Sequence record: NC_070999.1
DNA length: 64,000 bases
Strand: one strand, 5' to 3'
In this document: positions 4,601 to 43,240 of the stretch, piece by piece
How the letters are laid out: each line of letters starts with the position of its first letter
How positions within the stretch are numbered: position 1 is the stretch's first letter
Program-made: the position numbers and the translations under genes
The notes under the pieces: generated by a model
Database searches by the model: none
Told to the model about the DNA's origin: nothing
The model's input: the letters and a program-made list of their open reading frames with translations, nothing else

Positions 4601-5987
4601 ACAGGAAGAAGTTACCTTTGGCGGTACCTTTGGTCGAAGTGATCAAGCGATGGTAAGACGTACTCGTGGTCAATTGCCAAGTTACGCAGGGATCATCTCT
4701 GAAGCCGGTAAGGACTCAGGTAAAGTAGGATTTATCTCTTATCTAACTTCTGACGCCAAGATTGTTGACTATGCTGGTAACGTGGATGTAACTCAAGAAA
4801 CCACTAACGCAGGTCGTGGTTCAGTAACCGCTAACCTACTTTATGGTACAACACGAGATGATAGCAAACGCACTATGTTCTCAGGTGTTCAGCTAAGTCA
4901 ATGGATGGCTACTGATAGTTATGTCGCTAACCCTATTAGAACTCCTTCTGATAGTGTAGTAGCTTATCGTAACTCAGAACTCTATTGTTCTTATGCTAAA
5001 GAGTCGGGTATCGTTACCGCTATTACCGCTGACGGCATGACTGTTAAGTATGATAATGGTAGTGAAGATAAATTCCCACTTGGCTATGAAGTAGGTAAAG
5101 GTGCGGGCGAGTACCACAAACATCTTAAAATCACCGATATGAAAGTTGGTGATAAAGTTGATAAAGGTGATGTACTTGCTTGGGATGATTGTTTCTACAC
5201 TCGGGATTTGACTAATCCAAAACGGATCGTTATTAAACTTGGGACAATGGCACGTATTGCATTAGTAGAAGATCAATTCACATTTGAAGACTCCATAGGT
5301 ATTACCCAGAAGTATGCGGATCTGAATACCACCCCTTACTTGAAAAACAATGCGTTTAAGATCGGCTATGAACAAGCTATTAAACTCTACGTTAAGGTCG
5401 GTGACAAGGTTGAGTATGATCAAGTACTAGCTGATGTGATGGATCCTTCTTCCGCTATGTTCGAAGAGGAAGGTACTAACTCTATTGCTGGTTTAGATCG
5501 TCTTGGTATTAAACAGATCAAAGCTAAGCAAGCTGGAGTGATTACCAAGATCGACGTTATTTATAATGGTGATCTTGATACAGCTGAGGAGTCTTTGAAG
5601 ACGTTTATCCAAGAGCAAGATAAGCTACGTGCCAAGAAAGCTAAGTTCCGGGAGCTTGCTGCTGATAATGGTAACGTAGGTGGTAACACCTCAGTAGGTA
5701 AATCTAAGGTTTATCCTAACACTGCTTCTGTTACTATTACCATTGAGAGTAAACTCACCACCACCACTGCTGATAAGTTCGTAGCAGGTAACCAGATGAA
5801 AGGCACGGTAGGGTTCATTTACCCAGATCCTATCTATACTGTCGATGGTCGAGAAGTTGATGTTAAGTTCTCTTTGAAGTCTTTGCTTAACCGAATGGTT
5901 TTGAGTCTTCGTGATAAACTGGTAGCTAATGAATTGAACCATGTTTACACTAGTCGCATGATGAAGAAATATGGGAGATATGAATAA
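1620..5987 (+). CDS. virion RNA polymerase beta subunit (phiKZ gp178-like)
   Basis: 1455 aa; C-terminal beta motifs (TFEDSIG, DKFVAGNQMKG equivalent to GDK..GRHGNKG); TAATG coupling to the beta' gene; size and synteny match phiKZ-like phages. Confidence 0.9.
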   Translation: MQEHPVNFDELSGLEGLLYSQFVKLHGTRERANDVVNPRYQVVGDIMLPRNSLIHYQGNIPGELGPSNTAAFISNYDKRINIFFNVNYETPLGTTKIVPIQLTKLIKQYEGGHYLYTRARQYQTVIHKEGELLVNNLAIGKIPVQYRRQTVFTPFQRSYNELYTLMESVNEFSQYDIHQFVEFKLPRSFPSYKTLELKFEKYKRFFNNEGVIEKYEKEALKEFQAEESFWLLDLFGILIGFENKQYSLFNRLNDRARSQLEMIFSYNGVCWIANLQTLINLIGYDDKPEDTSPRPIKFNYFKRFYLALISLVSPLSEEVVEESYEQPEETTKEEVVADRSEKGGRGSGRESEEKSPLVPNTTPGGLADLYASSKGTTPAVSDTSGTKGEKTPEGTLPGSSESENNSVPTETTEKSPEEEWGADIDDSVFERASIEQATIVNSEEAYSPVSTINRILERKAARGQLTTKEKEYYTNASVSYLDIEFGGHLLSEIVDIKPEDLVMKPKTFAPKSEAVTDESVLRSRSMELTKGYVEQFLERDIMGAVLAVQNGGTALLDLNRETIITADSKYDVYKMKLQPVDNGNQSTRQFRLPKVASDGSFTINGVKSYAQLVRMDLPVRKINPVKVAISSYYDKKLMIERSAYKVDDYNHWLKTNIIQKSYEDKSITVKLGSFKSELKEVCWYYSVLASRFKEITVGGLEFNFDTESILVKHPKWKKYCKGDSWVIGDEHGVPVLIDNTGLVMIDGVEKGYIEEILRLPMAKAPVPTATANINGYKFPVVVVLAYWIGFSELVKRLKPTHRVVEPGTRPMLNANEYIVQFADERLILDRRDGLSTLIFSGLRKLDGLANFSKAQLDDPNVWFSLINDSRVKPSHFKEMDLIYDMFIDPITARELERRGYPLIMDKLITRAVEMLLNNEAEHEVEIAEQRLVGFERFPGHVYRELVKSTRQFRNKPNTGKKTFDLNPEAIMMNILTDSSMQPVEEVNPAHQIKQQEEVTFGGTFGRSDQAMVRRTRGQLPSYAGIISEAGKDSGKVGFISYLTSDAKIVDYAGNVDVTQETTNAGRGSVTANLLYGTTRDDSKRTMFSGVQLSQWMATDSYVANPIRTPSDSVVAYRNSELYCSYAKESGIVTAITADGMTVKYDNGSEDKFPLGYEVGKGAGEYHKHLKITDMKVGDKVDKGDVLAWDDCFYTRDLTNPKRIVIKLGTMARIALVEDQFTFEDSIGITQKYADLNTTPYLKNNAFKIGYEQAIKLYVKVGDKVEYDQVLADVMDPSSAMFEEEGTNSIAGLDRLGIKQIKAKQAGVITKIDVIYNGDLDTAEESLKTFIQEQDKLRAKKAKFRELAADNGNVGGNTSVGKSKVYPNTASVTITIESKLTTTTADKFVAGNQMKGTVGFIYPDPIYTVDGREVDVKFSLKSLLNRMVLSLRDKLVANELNHVYTSRMMKKYGRYE

Positions 5988-29259: not shown

Positions 29260-30204
29260 ATGAACAAACAAGTTAAAATCGAAGTTCCGGCTAACGTAAC
29301 TGGTATGGAAGTTTGGAAAGCTTTTGAAGCTAAAGGCAAACCGGTTCTTCAGATCAGTGAAGCTGAATGGCAACAAGCCAGCGGCGCTACAGATTACTAT
29401 GACCACTGGAGTGAAATCTCTACCCAAGGTCACAAGGTAGCTTTGAGTATTGATGATCACGGTCGCCACGTTATCATGATAAAAGGTGAAGGATTTATCT
29501 TTCAACGTTATTCTGATAGCAGTACTACCTGGGCCCTTAACGGAATCCAGAAGTTACACGATAATGTCGGTCATTCAGCTATTGAACTGGATGGCTGGAA
29601 GTACATTTGTGAGCGGTTCAAAGTTCAACCTGTCGTTGAATGCGAACCAGCCATTGTAGATCAAGGTGAGGAGAAAGAAATGGCTCCTAAAGATAAAGTG
29701 ATTAAGATCACTGTTACCAACGAACAAGCACAATCTGAAGCTAACCAAATTAAGGAAGAACCTAAAATGACTCAAACTACTTCTGCTCTGAACCTGAACT
29801 CTGACATGAACAACGCAGCTCCTGCTGTATCCACCGATACTTCTAACCTGGGTATCAGTACCACTACTGGCGTACTGGTGGCCGCTGGTGCAGCACTGGG
29901 TACCTGTCTGGGTATTCAGTATGCTGAAAACCGTTTTGATCTGACTTCCAATGTGATCACTGGCGCAGCTGTTACTCTGGCTGCTGCTGCATCTTTCGGT
30001 GCAGCTAAAGTTGGCCTGAATGAGAAACTTGGTACTTATACCGGCATCGCTTCTCACGCAGCTATGGGTGCTCTGGTTGGTGGTTTGACAGCTCACAGTT
30101 TGAAGTTTGGTGCTGACAAGTATCTTCCTTCCTTGGAACTGCAAGACGATGCTACTGAGCTGGCTCTGATCGAAGGAACTGAACTTCCGGTACTGGAAGC
30201 GTAA
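29260..30204 (+). CDS. hypothetical protein with C-terminal glycine/alanine-zipper membrane segments
   Basis: Three hydrophobic GxxxG/A-rich helices in the C-terminal half. Confidence 0.7.
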   Translation: MNKQVKIEVPANVTGMEVWKAFEAKGKPVLQISEAEWQQASGATDYYDHWSEISTQGHKVALSIDDHGRHVIMIKGEGFIFQRYSDSSTTWALNGIQKLHDNVGHSAIELDGWKYICERFKVQPVVECEPAIVDQGEEKEMAPKDKVIKITVTNEQAQSEANQIKEEPKMTQTTSALNLNSDMNNAAPAVSTDTSNLGISTTTGVLVAAGAALGTCLGIQYAENRFDLTSNVITGAAVTLAAAASFGAAKVGLNEKLGTYTGIASHAAMGALVGGLTAHSLKFGADKYLPSLELQDDATELALIEGTELPVLEA

Positions 30205-38895: not shown

Positions 38896-39747
38896 TTAAC
38901 GTTTTCTTGGGACCATCATCTTAAGTGTGTCAGAAACGCCCTTTGGATCCGCGTAACTTAAATGTTTCTTCATCTCTTCGTTAAAGAACTCTTTAAATTC
39001 CCTAGCTGAATCTGCGTATCTTTCTACATCGTCTCGTACATCGTCCACAGATACACCATAACGACTTACTGCTTCCTGCATTCCTCTACGACAGGTCTTA
39101 TAGATATAAGCCTTTGTAGCTAATTCTACAAGCTCGTAGAATTTATCGTACATCTTGGGAGGAATCACAGAAAAATGTTCATCATAAGCCAGCACTACTT
39201 TGGCTATCATATTAAACATTGCTGCACCAGCGTCCCTTATTAAGAAAGAGTTGTTTCCAGTCATGGTGAAGCTAGTGAAAGAGCGCTGAACATTACTATC
39301 ATCCAATCCAGACATTAGACGATTCAACGCATTACCCACTTGACCACCGCTCCCACAAGCACCATTACCAGCGGTCATGTTATACCCAGAAGCTATCGCG
39401 CGATTAAGATTACCTGGGTAAACTTCAATAACTGAAATAATTTTTCTACCGCCAGTAAGGAAATCAGGTACATTTACCGCTATAATGCCAGATTGTAAGT
39501 TGGTTATTCTAGCAGAACTCAAATCAATGACTTCAGACGAACCACCTGCAACGTTAACTAATGGAGCTACCATCTTGAGTATAACCTTCTCGCGGATACC
39601 TTGTTCAATACTGTACTCGGTGTTAACTGGCGACCATACAGATCCGTAAGACTGGTTTGGGTTGTCAAAGGCTAACTTTAACAAATACTCAGGGATATCA
39701 TTTACCCCTGATATTAAATTCTGAATAGAAAAATCAACGGGGTTCAT
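38896..39747 (-). CDS. conserved hypothetical/virion protein
   Basis: 283-aa ORF with GGAGG SD. Confidence 0.6.
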   Translation of the reverse strand: MNPVDFSIQNLISGVNDIPEYLLKLAFDNPNQSYGSVWSPVNTEYSIEQGIREKVILKMVAPLVNVAGGSSEVIDLSSARITNLQSGIIAVNVPDFLTGGRKIISVIEVYPGNLNRAIASGYNMTAGNGACGSGGQVGNALNRLMSGLDDSNVQRSFTSFTMTGNNSFLIRDAGAAMFNMIAKVVLAYDEHFSVIPPKMYDKFYELVELATKAYIYKTCRRGMQEAVSRYGVSVDDVRDDVERYADSAREFKEFFNEEMKKHLSYADPKGVSDTLKMMVPRKR

Positions 39748-39762
39748 AATAACCCTCCTATA

Positions 39763-39791
39763 TTTTTTCAGATAGATATTATTTAAGTGTT
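39763..39791 (+). promoter_or_regulatory. putative early promoter for the HNH gene
   Basis: TTTTTTCAGATAGATATTATTTAAGTGTT. Confidence 0.7.
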
Positions 39792-39808: not shown

Positions 39809-40861
39809 ATGAAAAATAGTTATCAAAATCTTGACTTTTATTTACTAACCGACATCCTGGAACTTAAATATGACGAGTCTAGTTCATATGATGAACGTGT
39901 TCAAAAGCGTTACAATTACGTTAAAGAGCAATTGGAACTAGATCCTAACTATGAAGGTTGGGACTATCCGGAATACTATAAATTTAAATACACTGGGGAA
40001 ATAATATATTTAAATTCATTTAACTATATAGTTTCTACGAATGGGAAATTTGCTGTATTGGACGACGATGGTACAAGATTTTCTTTATGTAATGGTTCTC
40101 GTAGCGGACCGTACAGAGAAATCAGCATCAGGGATCTGGAAAACAAAAGAATACACATGAACGTCCATAGAGTACTTGCTTGTACATTCATAATGGACGA
40201 ATACAAGGTTGGGGTTTGGAAGCTGTTCTGCAATCACAAGGATCTTAACAAACATAATGACACATTCATTAATTTAGAGTGGACAACACCAAGGGATAAC
40301 ATAATTCACGCATGGGTTAACGACGCGCATAAAACTCCCAGAACTTATCATGGAGGTAACGTTTTTATAGGTAAATATATTCTAGATGATGAGTATGAAG
40401 GTAAAACTTTTTCTATAGATGGTTCCAAGGGACTAATGGATGTTGGGTTAAACCACACTTTTGTAATTTCCAGTATATTAGGTAACTCCAAATGTTGCTA
40501 CGGGTTCATTTGGTCATTTGGCGTGCCTGAAGATTTGAACGTTTATCCTTCTATACCAATAACGTTAGCTAGTAGGGTTGCAACTGATGTAACTTACACA
40601 TTAGAAAGACTGATACCTATATTGGGAAAGATAATTGAAACCGGTGAAACATTTGTTTTGTATGGAAGAACTGAAATTTCTGACAATGGATTTAGCCAAT
40701 CTCCAAGCAAAGTTTTTGAATATTCAAAAACGGGTAAACCTTATAAAGGTTGTATTTTCAAAAGAGTGTCTAGGTTAGAAGGAAATAAACACCAAAGAGG
40801 CCTCACTAGAAAACAAATGGAATACTTAGGATTAAAATCTAAATATAAACAAAACAAATAA
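39809..40861 (+). CDS. free-standing HNH homing endonuclease (I-HmuI/NUMOD4-like)
   Basis: VHRVLACTF...CNHKDLNKHND...NLEWTT..DN motif; C-terminal repeated DNA-binding-type modules. Confidence 0.85.
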   Translation: MKNSYQNLDFYLLTDILELKYDESSSYDERVQKRYNYVKEQLELDPNYEGWDYPEYYKFKYTGEIIYLNSFNYIVSTNGKFAVLDDDGTRFSLCNGSRSGPYREISIRDLENKRIHMNVHRVLACTFIMDEYKVGVWKLFCNHKDLNKHNDTFINLEWTTPRDNIIHAWVNDAHKTPRTYHGGNVFIGKYILDDEYEGKTFSIDGSKGLMDVGLNHTFVISSILGNSKCCYGFIWSFGVPEDLNVYPSIPITLASRVATDVTYTLERLIPILGKIIETGETFVLYGRTEISDNGFSQSPSKVFEYSKTGKPYKGCIFKRVSRLEGNKHQRGLTRKQMEYLGLKSKYKQNK

Positions 40862-40898
40862 CTTAACCTTCACTCTCCAATGGAGAGTGAAGGTTAAG
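40862..40898. terminator. bidirectional terminator between the HNH gene and the RNA island
   Basis: 18-bp arms: CTTAACCTTCACTCTCCA-A-TGGAGAGTGAAGGTTAAG. Confidence 0.85.
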
Positions 40899-40924
40899 AA
40901 TATCGTTATTTTATTTCAATACAC

Positions 40925-41720
40925 ATTCCATAAGGTTATCAATCTTCCACACCGAGTGCTTCGGCAAATGGTATTCAAGATAACCCTACAGGTCGTGCAT
41001 TTACTACACCACTTCTACCCGACGAAAGGTAGCATACAGTTTGCTCTGTTAGCTCTAGTCGTCTAGTAAAAGATCTAGTCTTTATACTCTAGGTCACTAA
41101 CGTCTGCGCTGTCTAAAACACCGACCATACCCGCAGGTACGGAGTGTCGGAACTCACTGTTAGGGCGTTCCTAAATAGCGAACAAGTCAGATCTAAATTG
41201 ACCTGAGTCGTTCTGGACATCTTTGTTTCATGTCGCGGTCTTACTTCGACTATAACTTTCAGACTTATATGCTGACTAAACAGCTTTACGTTTCGTCTGA
41301 AAGGTAACACCTCTTTGTTTTGCGTCCTGAGGTTTCTATTTGGGACGATCCCGCCACGTAGGGATTGGACGTCTCTTAACTGTTTGAATGCACCGTTAGG
41401 ATAAAGGAGACATGCTGACCGAGCATTATGACAACGGGAAACAATTAAGAGACTACTGGGACGATCACTACTTTTGAATTAACAGACATTGGGTAAGTGA
41501 GGACTTTTGCAATTGGTTCTGCGAATTTCTAAGTAGTGATCGAAAGGTTGAACTATCAGTCGCCCGCTTCACTTAACGCAGATGGTTAATTAGAAACCTG
41601 ATAGTTCGTAAAGGGTTAGTTATCCATGAGAGTTTTAACTTTTCCGTTAGGCTTTGAGTTTCAACAATTTGTGATAGAGCATGAAGCAACGGGAGGTCTA
41701 AAATCAAACATAAATAACTA
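40925..41720 (-). ncRNA. candidate large (~800 nt) structured non-coding RNA
   Basis: No credible ORF; many long complementary pairs (41371-85/41439-53, 41462-73/41531-42, 41550-59/41598-607, 41330-38/41591-99, 41256-64/41295-303); plus-strand A-C mismatches become G-U on the minus strand. Confidence 0.65.
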
Positions 41721-41725
41721 GAAAG

Positions 41726-41809
41726 TGGTCTCCGAGGACGGGATCGAACCGTCACGCCATAAGCGAGGGATTTTAAATCCCTTGTGTCTACCGATTTCAC
41801 CACTCGGAG
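41726..41809 (-). tRNA. tRNA-Leu(TAA)
   Basis: Cloverleaf with long variable arm; anticodon loop TTTAAAA; GTTCGAT T-loop; encoded CCA. Confidence 0.93.
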
Positions 41810-41814
41810 GATAA

Positions 41815-41889
41815 TAAGGATTATTGGATTCGAACCAATTCAATCTCTCTAATGGTGAGAGCGAGTTACCACCTAACTCTGCAATCCTT
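41815..41889 (-). tRNA. non-canonical tRNA-like gene (CAT anticodon, atypical loop, no CCA)
   Basis: Perfect stems AAGGATT/AATCCTT, GAGTT/AACTC, CTCTC/GAGAG and ATTGG/CCAAT with TTCGAAT T-loop; anticodon loop ACCATTA. Confidence 0.6.
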
Positions 41890-41896
41890 AAAGGGG

Positions 41897-42030
41897 TTAG
41901 ATCTTTCTCTTTGTCGTCATGAAAACCAGCAGGTCTCATATTGTTTATTTGTCTCGGTCACTTCAATTCGAGTCGAAGTGTAATTTGTCGGACAAATGTT
42001 AGATGGACAAGTTTCTTGAGAAAGATCTAA
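41897..42030 (-). ncRNA. candidate ~134-nt structured RNA domain between tRNAs
   Basis: Closed by a perfect 13-bp helix TTAGATCTTTCTC/GAGAAAGATCTAA, with internal hairpins. Confidence 0.45.
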
Positions 42031-42032
42031 AC

Positions 42033-42108
42033 TGGCGGTTCCTGCTGGGATTGAACCAGCGACATACGGATTAACAGTCCGCTGTTCTACCTACTGAACT
42101 AAGGAACC
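42033..42108 (-). tRNA. tRNA-Asn(GTT)
   Basis: 76-nt cloverleaf; anticodon loop CTGTTAA; CCA end. Confidence 0.95.
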
Positions 42109-42274: not shown

Positions 42275-42280
42275 TGGAAA

Positions 42281-42480
42281 GGTGGGTAGGAAATATCCTA
42301 CCCGACATGTATTACTTCGTTCTATCCCCAAGGTGCGCAAATGTCCGACCCGGTTTAGGGTTGAAATTATCAAGTGGTAGATTCGGAAGTAATAATGTTC
42401 TTTGAAATAGGGGCGAGATGCTAGACCGGGGTTTATACCGGCATCTCCTGGTGGTAAGTTCACCAAGCGACTTCTGTTCA
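42281..42480 (-). ncRNA. candidate ~200-nt structured RNA or tRNA-operon leader
   Basis: Hairpins GGGTAGGA/TCCTACCC and GAGATGC/GCATCTC; long-range ATTACTTC/GAAGTAAT pair. Confidence 0.45.
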
Positions 42481-42564
42481 GTCTACTAACATCTCTAAGT
42501 CGAGTAACTAGATTAACTATTTACGTCTACTATACTTCAACATAATATAAACATTATGCTTATT

Positions 42565-43168
42565 AAATAAAAATACTCCTAGTTAGTTGGAGTAACTAGG
42601 AGTAAAACAAAAACGCATGGAAGCATTTTTGAACGGCTCATTACTTTTTAATTAACTCTTAGTAAAAACTAATTAAAAAGTAGGTGTCGACTTAACACCT
42701 ACAAAAATCAAATCTACAGGAAATAGAACAAAACAATGAAAAAGAAAACGCAAACCAACGCACGAAGAACCCCGAGTTCTTCCTTAAGAACACTTTGGTA
42801 AATATCCTTAAGGAAGAGAAGATGTAGGGATCATCTTCTCTGGGGTAACAAGCACCTAAACGTACATGAAAGCAAGGGAATACTTTCTTAATAGTAACTC
42901 TTTAGAATTAACATTAAGAAAGTCACAGATATCTAGGAGGAGGAGAATACCTGTGACCTTTTATTACGGAGGATTTGAAATGCAAGAAGTCAACTGTTAG
43001 CGGCAGCCTGAACTTCTTTAAGTTCACTTAATTGGAATAAACTTAAAGAAATAAGGTAACAAATAATATAATCTATTACCTTAAACCAAAACGGTATAAA
43101 CCTACATAAAGAGGATCCGATCATGAAAAACTTCCACTGACAACAGGTTGAGGTTTTTCTTTCACATA
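42565..43168 (-). ncRNA. candidate hairpin-punctuated antisense RNA array (~600 nt) with five anti-SD/anti-AUG linkers
   Basis: About 12 hairpins whose plus-strand A-C mismatches are G-U pairs on the minus strand; each long linker is complementary to SD...ATG; ends in a hairpin plus U-tract. Confidence 0.65.
42574..42604 (-). terminator. intrinsic terminator ending the hairpin array
   Basis: 12-bp stem TACTCCTAGTTA/TAACTAGGAGTA, followed on the minus strand by TTTTTATTT. Confidence 0.75.
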
Positions 43169-43210
43169 TAATAAATACATCGTTGTAAATAAATAAAAAT
43201 ATTTAAGTCC

Positions 43211-43240
43211 CATAATTTTTCAGATAGATATTATTTTATT
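43211..43240 (+). promoter_or_regulatory. putative early promoter
   Basis: CATAATTTTTCAGATAGATATTATT. Confidence 0.72.

Follow-up and report, generated by a model that had tools for sequence, protein, structure and literature searches.

Few classes of structured non-coding RNA (ncRNA) longer than 500 nt are, to our knowledge, known in bacteria and their phages, these being OLE, GOLLD, ROOL, HEARO and raiA, and each of the large classes has opened new biology. Phage tRNA clusters may also encode stable non-tRNA RNAs, as in phage T4, where species 1 and 2 (~120-140 nt) are released by tRNA-processing enzymes. GOLLD (RF01998) exceeds 800 nt, is found near tRNA islands and combines a conserved 3' with a variable 5' region, and in ROOL (RF03087) a long-range, covarying kissing interaction regarded as 'tertiary' was subsequently found to join separate molecules (bioRxiv 10.1101/2024.12.08.627333). 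For the type I hammerhead ribozymes of phages (RF00163), the presumed role is the processing of long transcripts (Perreault et al. 2011, PMC3088659). Here, a region adjacent to the tRNA genes of Aeromonas phage pAEv1810 (NC_070999; genus Ferozepurvirus, 235 kb) is analysed in a window of 64 kb, the coordinates of which are identical to those of the genome. The minus strand of this region (40899..41725) probably encodes one large, stable, structured ncRNA, belonging to a previously undescribed family of jumbo phages related to the chimallin-encoding phage OBP.

Like GOLLD, the pAEv1810 RNA is phage-encoded, ~800 nt or more in length, located next to tRNA genes and divided into a conserved 3' and a variable 5' region. 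It differs from GOLLD in that no covariance-model match is obtained, in that its family occurs in OBP-related jumbo phages infecting Proteobacteria with a fixed synteny upstream of a DUF7484 gene, and in the internal hammerhead carried by the members of a sister clade. It is rated as a new class of large, tRNA-associated phage RNA without detectable GOLLD membership. ROOL is similarly a large phage or prophage RNA often situated near tRNA islands, but again the pAEv1810 RNA shows no covariance-model match; the complementary ACNGU and ACN'GU motifs described below could represent an intermolecular pairing of the ROOL kind. The type I hammerhead core and its covarying stems recur in the relatives OBP, N1M2, Kc263, AH04, SXP01, pEt-SU and others, but the pAEv1810 RNA lacks this core, and the ribozyme of the relatives has a stem I of 2-4 bp and sits in a larger conserved RNA. 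As with T4 species 1 and 2, a non-tRNA RNA is encoded in a phage tRNA operon, but at ~830 nt and with a modular build, and a 130-nt element of the same operon (41886-42030) is the closer analogue.

A structured RNA under selection on the minus strand

The stretch from 40899 to 41725 is a minus-strand structured RNA under selection. Its first base falls right after the encoded CCA of tRNA-Leu(UAA) (41726..41809, minus strand; predicted by ARAGORN and matched at 53.6 bits by the Rfam tRNA model), which lies directly 5' of it. It runs to an intrinsic terminator (40862..40898, minus strand) formed by a 17-bp stem and the U-rich tail UUAUUUGUUU, the point at which a preliminary description of the locus, made from the sequence alone, had placed its end. 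Folded from 41725 to 40899, the minus strand reaches a minimum free energy of -242.5 kcal/mol versus -197.1 +/- 6.9 kcal/mol in dinucleotide shuffles (z -6.6), whereas the plus strand of the same stretch attains a z of only -2.3. The two halves tested separately give z values of -4.3 (5' domain) and -3.8 (3' module), compared to -2.1 for a coding control. G-U pairs occupy 248 alignment cells in the predicted helices and A-C mismatches 16, an excess expected for an RNA transcribed in this direction; the count is biased by the derivation of the structure on the minus strand. The open reading frames (ORFs) of at least 30 amino acids in the region code for 31-76 amino acids and none is conserved, the frames are disrupted in relatives by indels (1, 2, 7 and 8 nt), and the substitutions lack a periodicity of three (58/60/67), in agreement with the earlier view that no credible ORF is present.

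At gathering thresholds, the Rfam 15 models match only tRNAs, and a permissive search (E<=10) of a 1.5-kb slice (40600-42100) returns only noise around the terminator. GOLLD, ROOL, RNase P, tmRNA, group I and II introns, HEARO and the small ribozymes show no match (Rfam 15; ARAGORN), nor do the GOLLD and ROOL models match at E<=1 in four of the relatives. This agrees with the preliminary description, which could assign the RNA neither to GOLLD or ROOL nor to RNase P, tmRNA or a group I intron. No published description of this RNA, or of a hammerhead in these phages, was found.

Copies of the RNA occur in the ferozepurviruses AVP1 (97% identity), ACP1 (94%) and PS1/PS2 (75%), as well as in five metagenome contigs. 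Between pAEv1810 and PS1, the segment 41486-41289, the core of the 5' domain, is 82-96% identical and 41042-40994 is 90% identical, other helices falling to 50-70%, while the neighbouring genes are 74-91% identical; parts of the RNA thus outconserve the neighbouring genes, which counts for selection. In an alignment of nine sequences, 98% of the cells in the helices are paired, and 16 pairs have changed on both sides versus 3.5 +/- 1.5 in column shuffles (reached in 0/500) and 1-6 in slid controls. The covarying pairs are located in the helices D1, D2, D7, D9 and H4, described below, and in the terminator. The proposal that the strand of the tRNAs encodes a large ncRNA, whether new or diverged, is thus borne out by strand-specific folding, covariation, conserved synteny and the terminator. 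It needs refining in one respect, since the RNA is a composite of a 550-nt 5' domain specific to Ferozepurvirus and an ancestral 3' module of 250 nt.

The 3' module and its long-range pairing

The 3' module (40927..41174, minus strand; ~250 nt) is matched by both nhmmer and covariance searches. It is common to OBP, N1M2, Yubaba, Kc263, AH04, D6, CF8, AerS_266, AhC3_1 and several uncultivated viral genomes, and in every case the DUF7484 virion gene follows downstream. In nhmmer searches, a profile of the OBP-type sequences matches only the 3' part of the Ferozepurvirus copies (E 2e-6 to 2e-8). Similarly, a covariance model (R1) built from 11 sequences, all from outside Ferozepurvirus, has its best match in the window at 41048-40988 on the minus strand (28.2 bits, E 4.3e-5), and matches 9/9 Ferozepurvirus copies and none of the distant phages. 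The synteny of the window also fits the family, where the module follows a tRNA, a tRNA-like gene or the hammerhead and precedes the terminator and DUF7484, and is interrupted in the window by an HNH gene insertion only.

The shared pieces of the module are, in order, the hairpin P-a, the core, a short hairpin, a CAGCC or CGACC motif and the long hairpin H4. P-a (41149..41171, minus strand) comprises the stem GGAAC/GUUCC and a conserved 13-nt loop, GCCCUAACAGUGA. The stem sequence differs from clade to clade, with two-sided changes in four of its five pairs, while every loop keeps the motif UAACNGU. The core, present in the window, consists of CAAACN'GU, NNGC, the 5-bp hairpin H2 and GAAGUNGU. 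H2 (41015..41032, minus strand; CUACC/GGUAG) is flanked by a conserved GAAGU, and all five of its pairs have changed on both sides with 99-100% of the cells paired. H4 (40928..40991, minus strand) has a 13-bp base (40991-79/40940-28) in which three pairs have changed on both sides between PS1 and the remaining sequences, and a counterpart long hairpin occurs in AhC3_1, CF8 and AerS_266. In these three phages the core is located at ~-225 relative to the start of DUF7484; the core of D6 is placed farther upstream and is followed by two small annotated ORFs. The distance from the tRNA or tRNA-like gene to P-a is only 170-260 nt in the Aeromonas phages outside Ferozepurvirus. For the compound hairpin noted earlier at 41121-50, the folding energy is -16.8 kcal/mol.

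Whichever base occupies N in the P-a loop (UAAC-N-GU), the core (AAC-N'-GU) carries its complement at N', and the loop is predicted to base-pair with the core 115 nt downstream, a pairing strongly supported by covariation. In the window, N is A41158 and N' is U41038. The 5' strand, ACAGU (41156..41160, minus strand), pairs with ACUGU (41036..41040, minus strand), which is situated inside the invariant CAAACNGU, through A41160-U41036, C41159-G41037, A41158-U41038, G41157-C41039 and U41156-A41040. Across 14 distinct sequences the 5-bp helix is 100% paired and its central pair is Watson-Crick in all: C-G in six, U-A in five and A-U in three. By phage, the pair is C/G in OBP, N1M2, Yubaba, Kc263, D6 and AerS_266, U/A in the uncultivated genomes, AH04, AhC3_1 and CF8, and A/U in Ferozepurvirus. 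At least four changes of the central pair are required on the protein tree, for example between CF8 and AerS_266 within one genus. The idea that the UAAC of the P-a loop is presented as an Asn codon to tRNA-Asn was dropped, since the loop covaries with the core.

An alternative helix, H1, joins the core pentamer 41040-41036 to GUGGU (41012-41008), a GUN''GU motif just 3' of H2. Its variable pair is A-U in six sequences, G-U in six and U-G in three, and a G at N'' is confined to sequences with U at N'. H1 and the P-a-to-core pairing are mutually exclusive and would compete for the same pentamer, with comparative support for both. The two pentamers of the P-a-to-core helix are complementary to each other and not to themselves, and the pairing could therefore equally form between molecules. 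A second R1 match in the window (29919-29979) is spurious, lying inside an ORF with H1 broken.

An exact 24-mer search of IMG/VR gave no match. Pattern scans with the core motif returned nine matches in IMG/VR and 118 in the GTDB genomes versus ~130 expected by chance, on our own estimate, and these matches, which score low with R1, were attributed to chance. The pattern was too narrow, in that members of the GGGAGAAGUUGU type escape it.

The 5' domain and the hammerhead-bearing relatives

The ~550-nt 5' domain (41175..41725) comprises nine hairpin units on the minus strand and occurs only in Ferozepurvirus. No homologue outside the genus was found by nhmmer or blastn, even with the search extended to 43300; a Ferozepurvirus nhmmer profile gave only marginal matches (E 0.06-0.4) in other phages, and an all-against-all blastn of the upstream regions returned tRNA matches only. 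The domain may have been added in this lineage alone, or its sequence may be too diverged to be recognised elsewhere. All the helices listed in the preliminary description were recovered at the positions and lengths it gave. Beginning at the 5' end, D1 (41617..41720) is a long branched hairpin in the RNAalifold structure, with a 12-bp closing stem (41720-09/41628-17) and inner helices (2 and 3) that have changed on both sides. D2 (41550..41607) contains the perfect 10-bp helix of the preliminary description (41550-59/41598-607), of which 10/10 pairs are kept in 9/9 sequences; in PS1 four stem positions differ and pairing is retained, one U-A pair having become C-G. The perfect 12-bp helix 41462-73/41531-42 forms the stem of D3 (41462..41542) and survives three one-sided changes to G-U, and the D3 tip (41482-41528) is cleanly missing in PS1, suggesting that it is a dispensable peripheral element.

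D4 (41371..41453) is built from the 15-bp helix 41371-85/41439-53 (14 Watson-Crick pairs and one G-U pair on the minus strand) and the two nested 5-bp helices 41393-97/41433-37 and 41412-16/41422-26, and these helices (13-15) are almost invariant. Helices 16 and 17, which form D5 (41365-61/41352-48) and D6 (41347-43/41327-23) within 41323..41365, never vary. D7 (41256..41303) consists of the perfect 9-bp helix 41256-64/41295-303 noted previously and an enclosed hairpin (41284-80/41275-71; helix 19) that covaries between GCUG/CAGC and GUCG/CGAC, with two pairs changed on both sides. D8 (41234-30/41220-16) and D9 (41213-00/41193-80) occupy 41180..41234, the position held by the hammerhead in the OBP-type relatives, and three pairs of helix 22 in this region have changed on both sides. 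The central hairpins D3-D6 are without covarying pairs, their support being energy and conservation only.

The complement 41330-38/41591-99, put forward in the preliminary description as a possible pseudoknot, is a perfect 9-bp match, and would join a 5' strand at 41591..41599 (minus strand) to 41330-41338 in the loop of D6. It is 9/9 Watson-Crick in eight sequences; in PS1, the single remaining comparison, GG to AU and C to U changes in one strand and an extra A in the other leave seven contiguous pairs, which the pairing can accommodate. By our own estimate, a 9-bp complement is expected about once by chance in 800 nt, and this candidate pseudoknot taken alone is not significant. The repeat of TGGGACGATC is found at 41341 and 41457, as described. 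D4 also holds look-alikes of both 3'-module motifs, CCUAACGGUG (41400-41391) and CAAACAGU (41386-41379), 4 nt apart, which could derive from an old duplication or provide the core pentamer ACUGU with a rival pairing site. D7 may resemble an OBP-type stem, CCUUCUGAACGAAAGC.

A DUF7484 tblastn search delineates a clade (63-74% identity) comprising the phages OBP (host Pseudomonas), SXP01 (Shewanella), N1M2 (Klebsiella), Yubaba (Serratia), Kc263 (Kosakonia), AH04 (Erwinia), Survivor (Pantoea), pEt-SU (Edwardsiella) and D6, CF8, AerS_266 and AhC3_1 (all Aeromonas). Chimallin is the shell protein of the phage nucleus, and RNA must be handled across this shell. Of these phages, OBP encodes chimallin (PMC10299810). 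The clade shares an order of tRNA genes, often a glutaredoxin or thioredoxin gene, an unannotated gap of ~0.5-1.6 kb (carrying two small annotated ORFs in D6), a hairpin followed by UUAUGUUUG, DUF7484 and a dTMP kinase gene, with the large-terminase gene nearby in most of them. No such gap exists in RisingSun, FishSpeaker, pTD1 and EL, where DUF7484 identity is <=48%.

The OBP-type gap, carried by OBP, N1M2, Yubaba, Kc263, AH04, SXP01, Survivor, pEt-SU and five uncultivated genomes, contains a conserved ~650-nt 5' domain, a type I hammerhead and, in most, a ~300-nt 3' domain. The hammerhead core is canonical (CUGANGA, stem II, GAAA, stem III, then UC and the cut) and stems I, II and III all covary, stem I being CAU/AUG, CUAU/AUAG, CACC/GGUG or CAG/CUG; it scores below the Rfam cut-off (23.7 versus 34 bits). 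The three-way junction with CUGANGA, GAAA and a UH cleavage site is present in 12 relatives. This unannotated ribozyme, within a conserved RNA of ~1.1 kb, is located at ~5590-5680 in OBP (L005), at 4959-5045 in L006, and also occurs in L010, L012, L014-L017 and L182, with a conserved CUCCA in the terminal loop of stem III. Its predicted cleavage site is directly 5' of the module, 8-10 nt before P-a. SXP01 (L009), Survivor (L015) and pEt-SU (L017) have the OBP-type 5' domain and hammerhead without the 3' module. In these three phages the RNA ends just past the cleavage site, so that the ribozyme cut falls just before the terminator hairpin, and the DUF7484 gene and terminator are retained; on the tree, this pattern would correspond to two independent losses of the module. 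The hammerhead phages form one clade on the DUF7484 tree (Shimodaira-Hasegawa-like approximate likelihood ratio test support, SH-aLRT, 95), which implies one gain or one loss of the ribozyme. The Aeromonas phages, including pAEv1810, branch outside this clade and have no hammerhead; the minus strand of the window contains no CUGANGA and no Rfam hammerhead match at E<=10. The 11-mer CAGACGAAACG, which corresponds to stem II, GAAA and stem III in OBP, was rejected as a hammerhead remnant, as it is the 5' strand of D7 and no CUGANGA is present. The motif AATATCTATC, the core of a promoter-like repeat of pAEv1810, also occurs within the OBP-type 5' domain ~330 nt before the hammerhead, and the OBP-type RNA may start there.

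Interpretation of the RNA and surrounding elements of the tRNA operon

The RNA is most likely processed, stable and trans-acting, analogous to GOLLD. Transcription of the tRNA operon would include the RNA, its 5' end would be freed by the host enzymes that mature tRNA-Leu, and its 3' end would be set by the terminator. The released RNA may then serve in trans as a folded scaffold that makes contact with a conserved partner through the invariant loops of its 3' module; this partner may be a protein, another RNA or, through ACNGU/ACN'GU, a second copy of the RNA itself. In the sister clade, the hammerhead cut 8-10 nt before P-a would release the module, while in the lineage of pAEv1810, which has no ribozyme, both parts would remain joined unless split by host RNases. 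Judging from strand, spacing and the absence of a strong internal terminator, the RNA would be co-transcribed with the tRNAs, the sole terminator candidate within the RNA being a weak 7-bp site (41142-41125), and the 5' end would, on the position of the first base, be a product of tRNA-Leu 3'-end processing. The opposite-strand HNH gene between the RNA and DUF7484 in pAEv1810 counts for the independence of the RNA from DUF7484. A bolder and rather doubtful extension is that this is a giant modular RNA class of nucleus-forming jumbo phages, in which ACNGU and ACN'GU pair head to tail between molecules to give RNA-only assemblies like those of GOLLD and ROOL, the sister-clade hammerhead releasing the assembling module.

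The RNA would represent a further large class, found in cultured, tractable jumbo phages that have the chimallin-encoding OBP as a close relative. Unusually, it is assembled from modules: a 5' domain that can be exchanged, a hammerhead that may or may not be present, and a conserved 3' module containing a covarying pairing and a competing helix. With concrete targets for mutation, such as A41158/U41038, and relatives with or without each part as natural controls, phage genetics can address the role of giant phage RNAs in laboratory hosts of the genera Aeromonas, Pseudomonas, Klebsiella and Serratia.

Several points weigh against a single stable RNA of this kind. The promoter, ends, stability and abundance of the RNA are all inferred, and the phage's own RNA polymerases may not obey a hairpin terminator. 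Most 5'-domain helices never vary in the nine sequences, which represent two sub-lineages only, and so have no covariation support. RNAalifold folds 41079-41003 differently depending on the sequences supplied, and in disagreement with the family-level H2; the nine-sequence refold was set aside and the family-level model trusted there. The family is confined to ~25 genomes of one phage clade, the narrow IMG/VR and GTDB pattern scans having given no further members. The shallow diversity of the 5' domain and the small clade are among the main weaknesses. The two parts could, moreover, be separate RNAs: the 5' domain (41725-41175) would be split from the 3' module (41174-40899) once transcribed, and each would act independently. 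This alternative is unlikely. The parts differ in evolutionary range, SXP01, Survivor and pEt-SU have the 5' part and hammerhead only, CF8, AerS_266 and AhC3_1 have only a short leader and the module, and the hammerhead of the relatives cuts 8-10 nt before P-a. In the window, however, the ribozyme core is lacking (no minus-strand CUGANGA; Rfam E<=10), the weak 7-bp site is the only candidate internal terminator, and long-range helices in the RNAalifold structure link the halves, though these never vary. It is improbable that the RNA is a cis-acting leader comparable to a riboswitch or attenuator, where alternation of the P-a-to-core pairing with H1 would govern read-through of the terminator into the DUF7484 operon. 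Such a role would accord with two mutually exclusive pairings that each have comparative support, and with the fixed position of the core in relatives at ~-225 from the DUF7484 start, followed by a hairpin and U-run, but an opposite-strand HNH gene of 1.05 kb intervenes in the window, a promoter-like 27-mer of its own precedes the ATG of DUF7484 by 24 nt, the gene and hairpin persist in three relatives that lack the module, and an antiterminator alternative to the terminator stem was not found.

The size, the tRNA-adjacent position and the pattern of a conserved 3' and variable 5' region would also be expected of a very diverged member of GOLLD or ROOL, which is highly improbable given the lack of a match in Rfam 15, whether at the gathering threshold or at E<=10 on 1.5 kb, and at E<=1 in four relatives. 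Slightly less credible still is an element acting at the DNA level (a replication origin, packaging site or promoter array) or a decaying spacer, with inverted repeats that function as DNA. The stretch is non-coding and rich in inverted repeats, the terminase is a few genes away and promoter-like repeats are nearby, but the strand asymmetry in folding and G-U usage is strong, two-sided changes preserve pairing, the terminator and, in relatives, the hammerhead are on the same strand, and parts of the RNA outconserve the neighbouring genes. The least credible of these explanations is a remnant of a mobile element, either a group I or II intron or a HEARO-like RNA of the adjacent HNH endonuclease. 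An HNH gene does abut the 3' end in the window, and PS1 has one among its tRNA genes, but the RNA occurs without the former gene in AVP1, ACP1, PS1 and the metagenome copies, no Rfam intron or HEARO model matches, and no gene is interrupted by the RNA.

The HNH endonuclease gene (39809-40861, plus strand; 1.05 kb) lies between the RNA terminator, which also faces its end, and the DUF7484 'virion structural protein' gene (38896-39747, minus strand). It is missing from AVP1, ACP1 and PS1, where the RNA is present, as it is without this gene in the metagenome contigs L026-L030, indicating that the gene is an insertion of which the RNA is independent. Relatives without the HNH gene have another hairpin and UUAUGUUUG at the terminator position; the insertion in pAEv1810 took the place of the ancestral terminator hairpin and a GATCTTTTGTAAC motif upstream of DUF7484. 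A different HNH endonuclease gene occurs in PS1, between tRNA-Met and tRNA-Arg.

The tRNA-Arg, tRNA-Met, tRNA-Asn and tRNA-Leu(UAA) genes of the window are all located on the minus strand (ARAGORN, Rfam). A 27-nt promoter-like repeat, AATAATATCTATCTGAAAAAnTATnGGA, is present twice on the same strand (43209-43235 and 39757-39783), each copy heading minus-strand units. The former is in the divergent intergenic region above the tRNA operon and is kept in AVP1, ACP1, PS1 and the metagenome contigs, and the latter is 24 nt ahead of the DUF7484 ATG. Three consecutive terminator-like hairpins (42574-42702, minus strand) between the promoter-like repeat and the tRNA genes suggest a separate short transcript of ~0.5-0.65 kb (43200-42575) with tiny ORFs only. 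The 300 nt upstream of tRNA-Arg (42275-42570, minus strand) are non-coding, richer in G+C (0.48-0.50) and more strongly folded on the minus (z -4.7) than on the plus strand (z -2.7), and may encode either a structured leader or one more RNA of this operon. A cloverleaf-like tRNA gene (41812-41885, minus strand), missed by ARAGORN and Rfam, has a 7-bp acceptor stem, a D arm, the T arm GGUUCGAAUCC and the anticodon loop ACCAUUA (CAU with C33). It is present in AVP1 and not in ACP1 or PS1, and CF8 has an annotated tRNA-Ile2 at a comparable place. Between this gene and tRNA-Asn, a conserved element of ~130-145 nt (41886-42030, minus strand) is near-identical across the ferozepurviruses; the Leu-to-Asn gap that holds it has a z of -4.6 and no Rfam match. 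The element probably represents a second RNA of this operon that is small and stable, and in its CF8 counterpart compensatory changes (AGAUCUUUCUC/GAGAAAGAUCU versus GGAUCUGACUC/GAGUAGAUCC) preserve both the closing stem and the inner hairpins.

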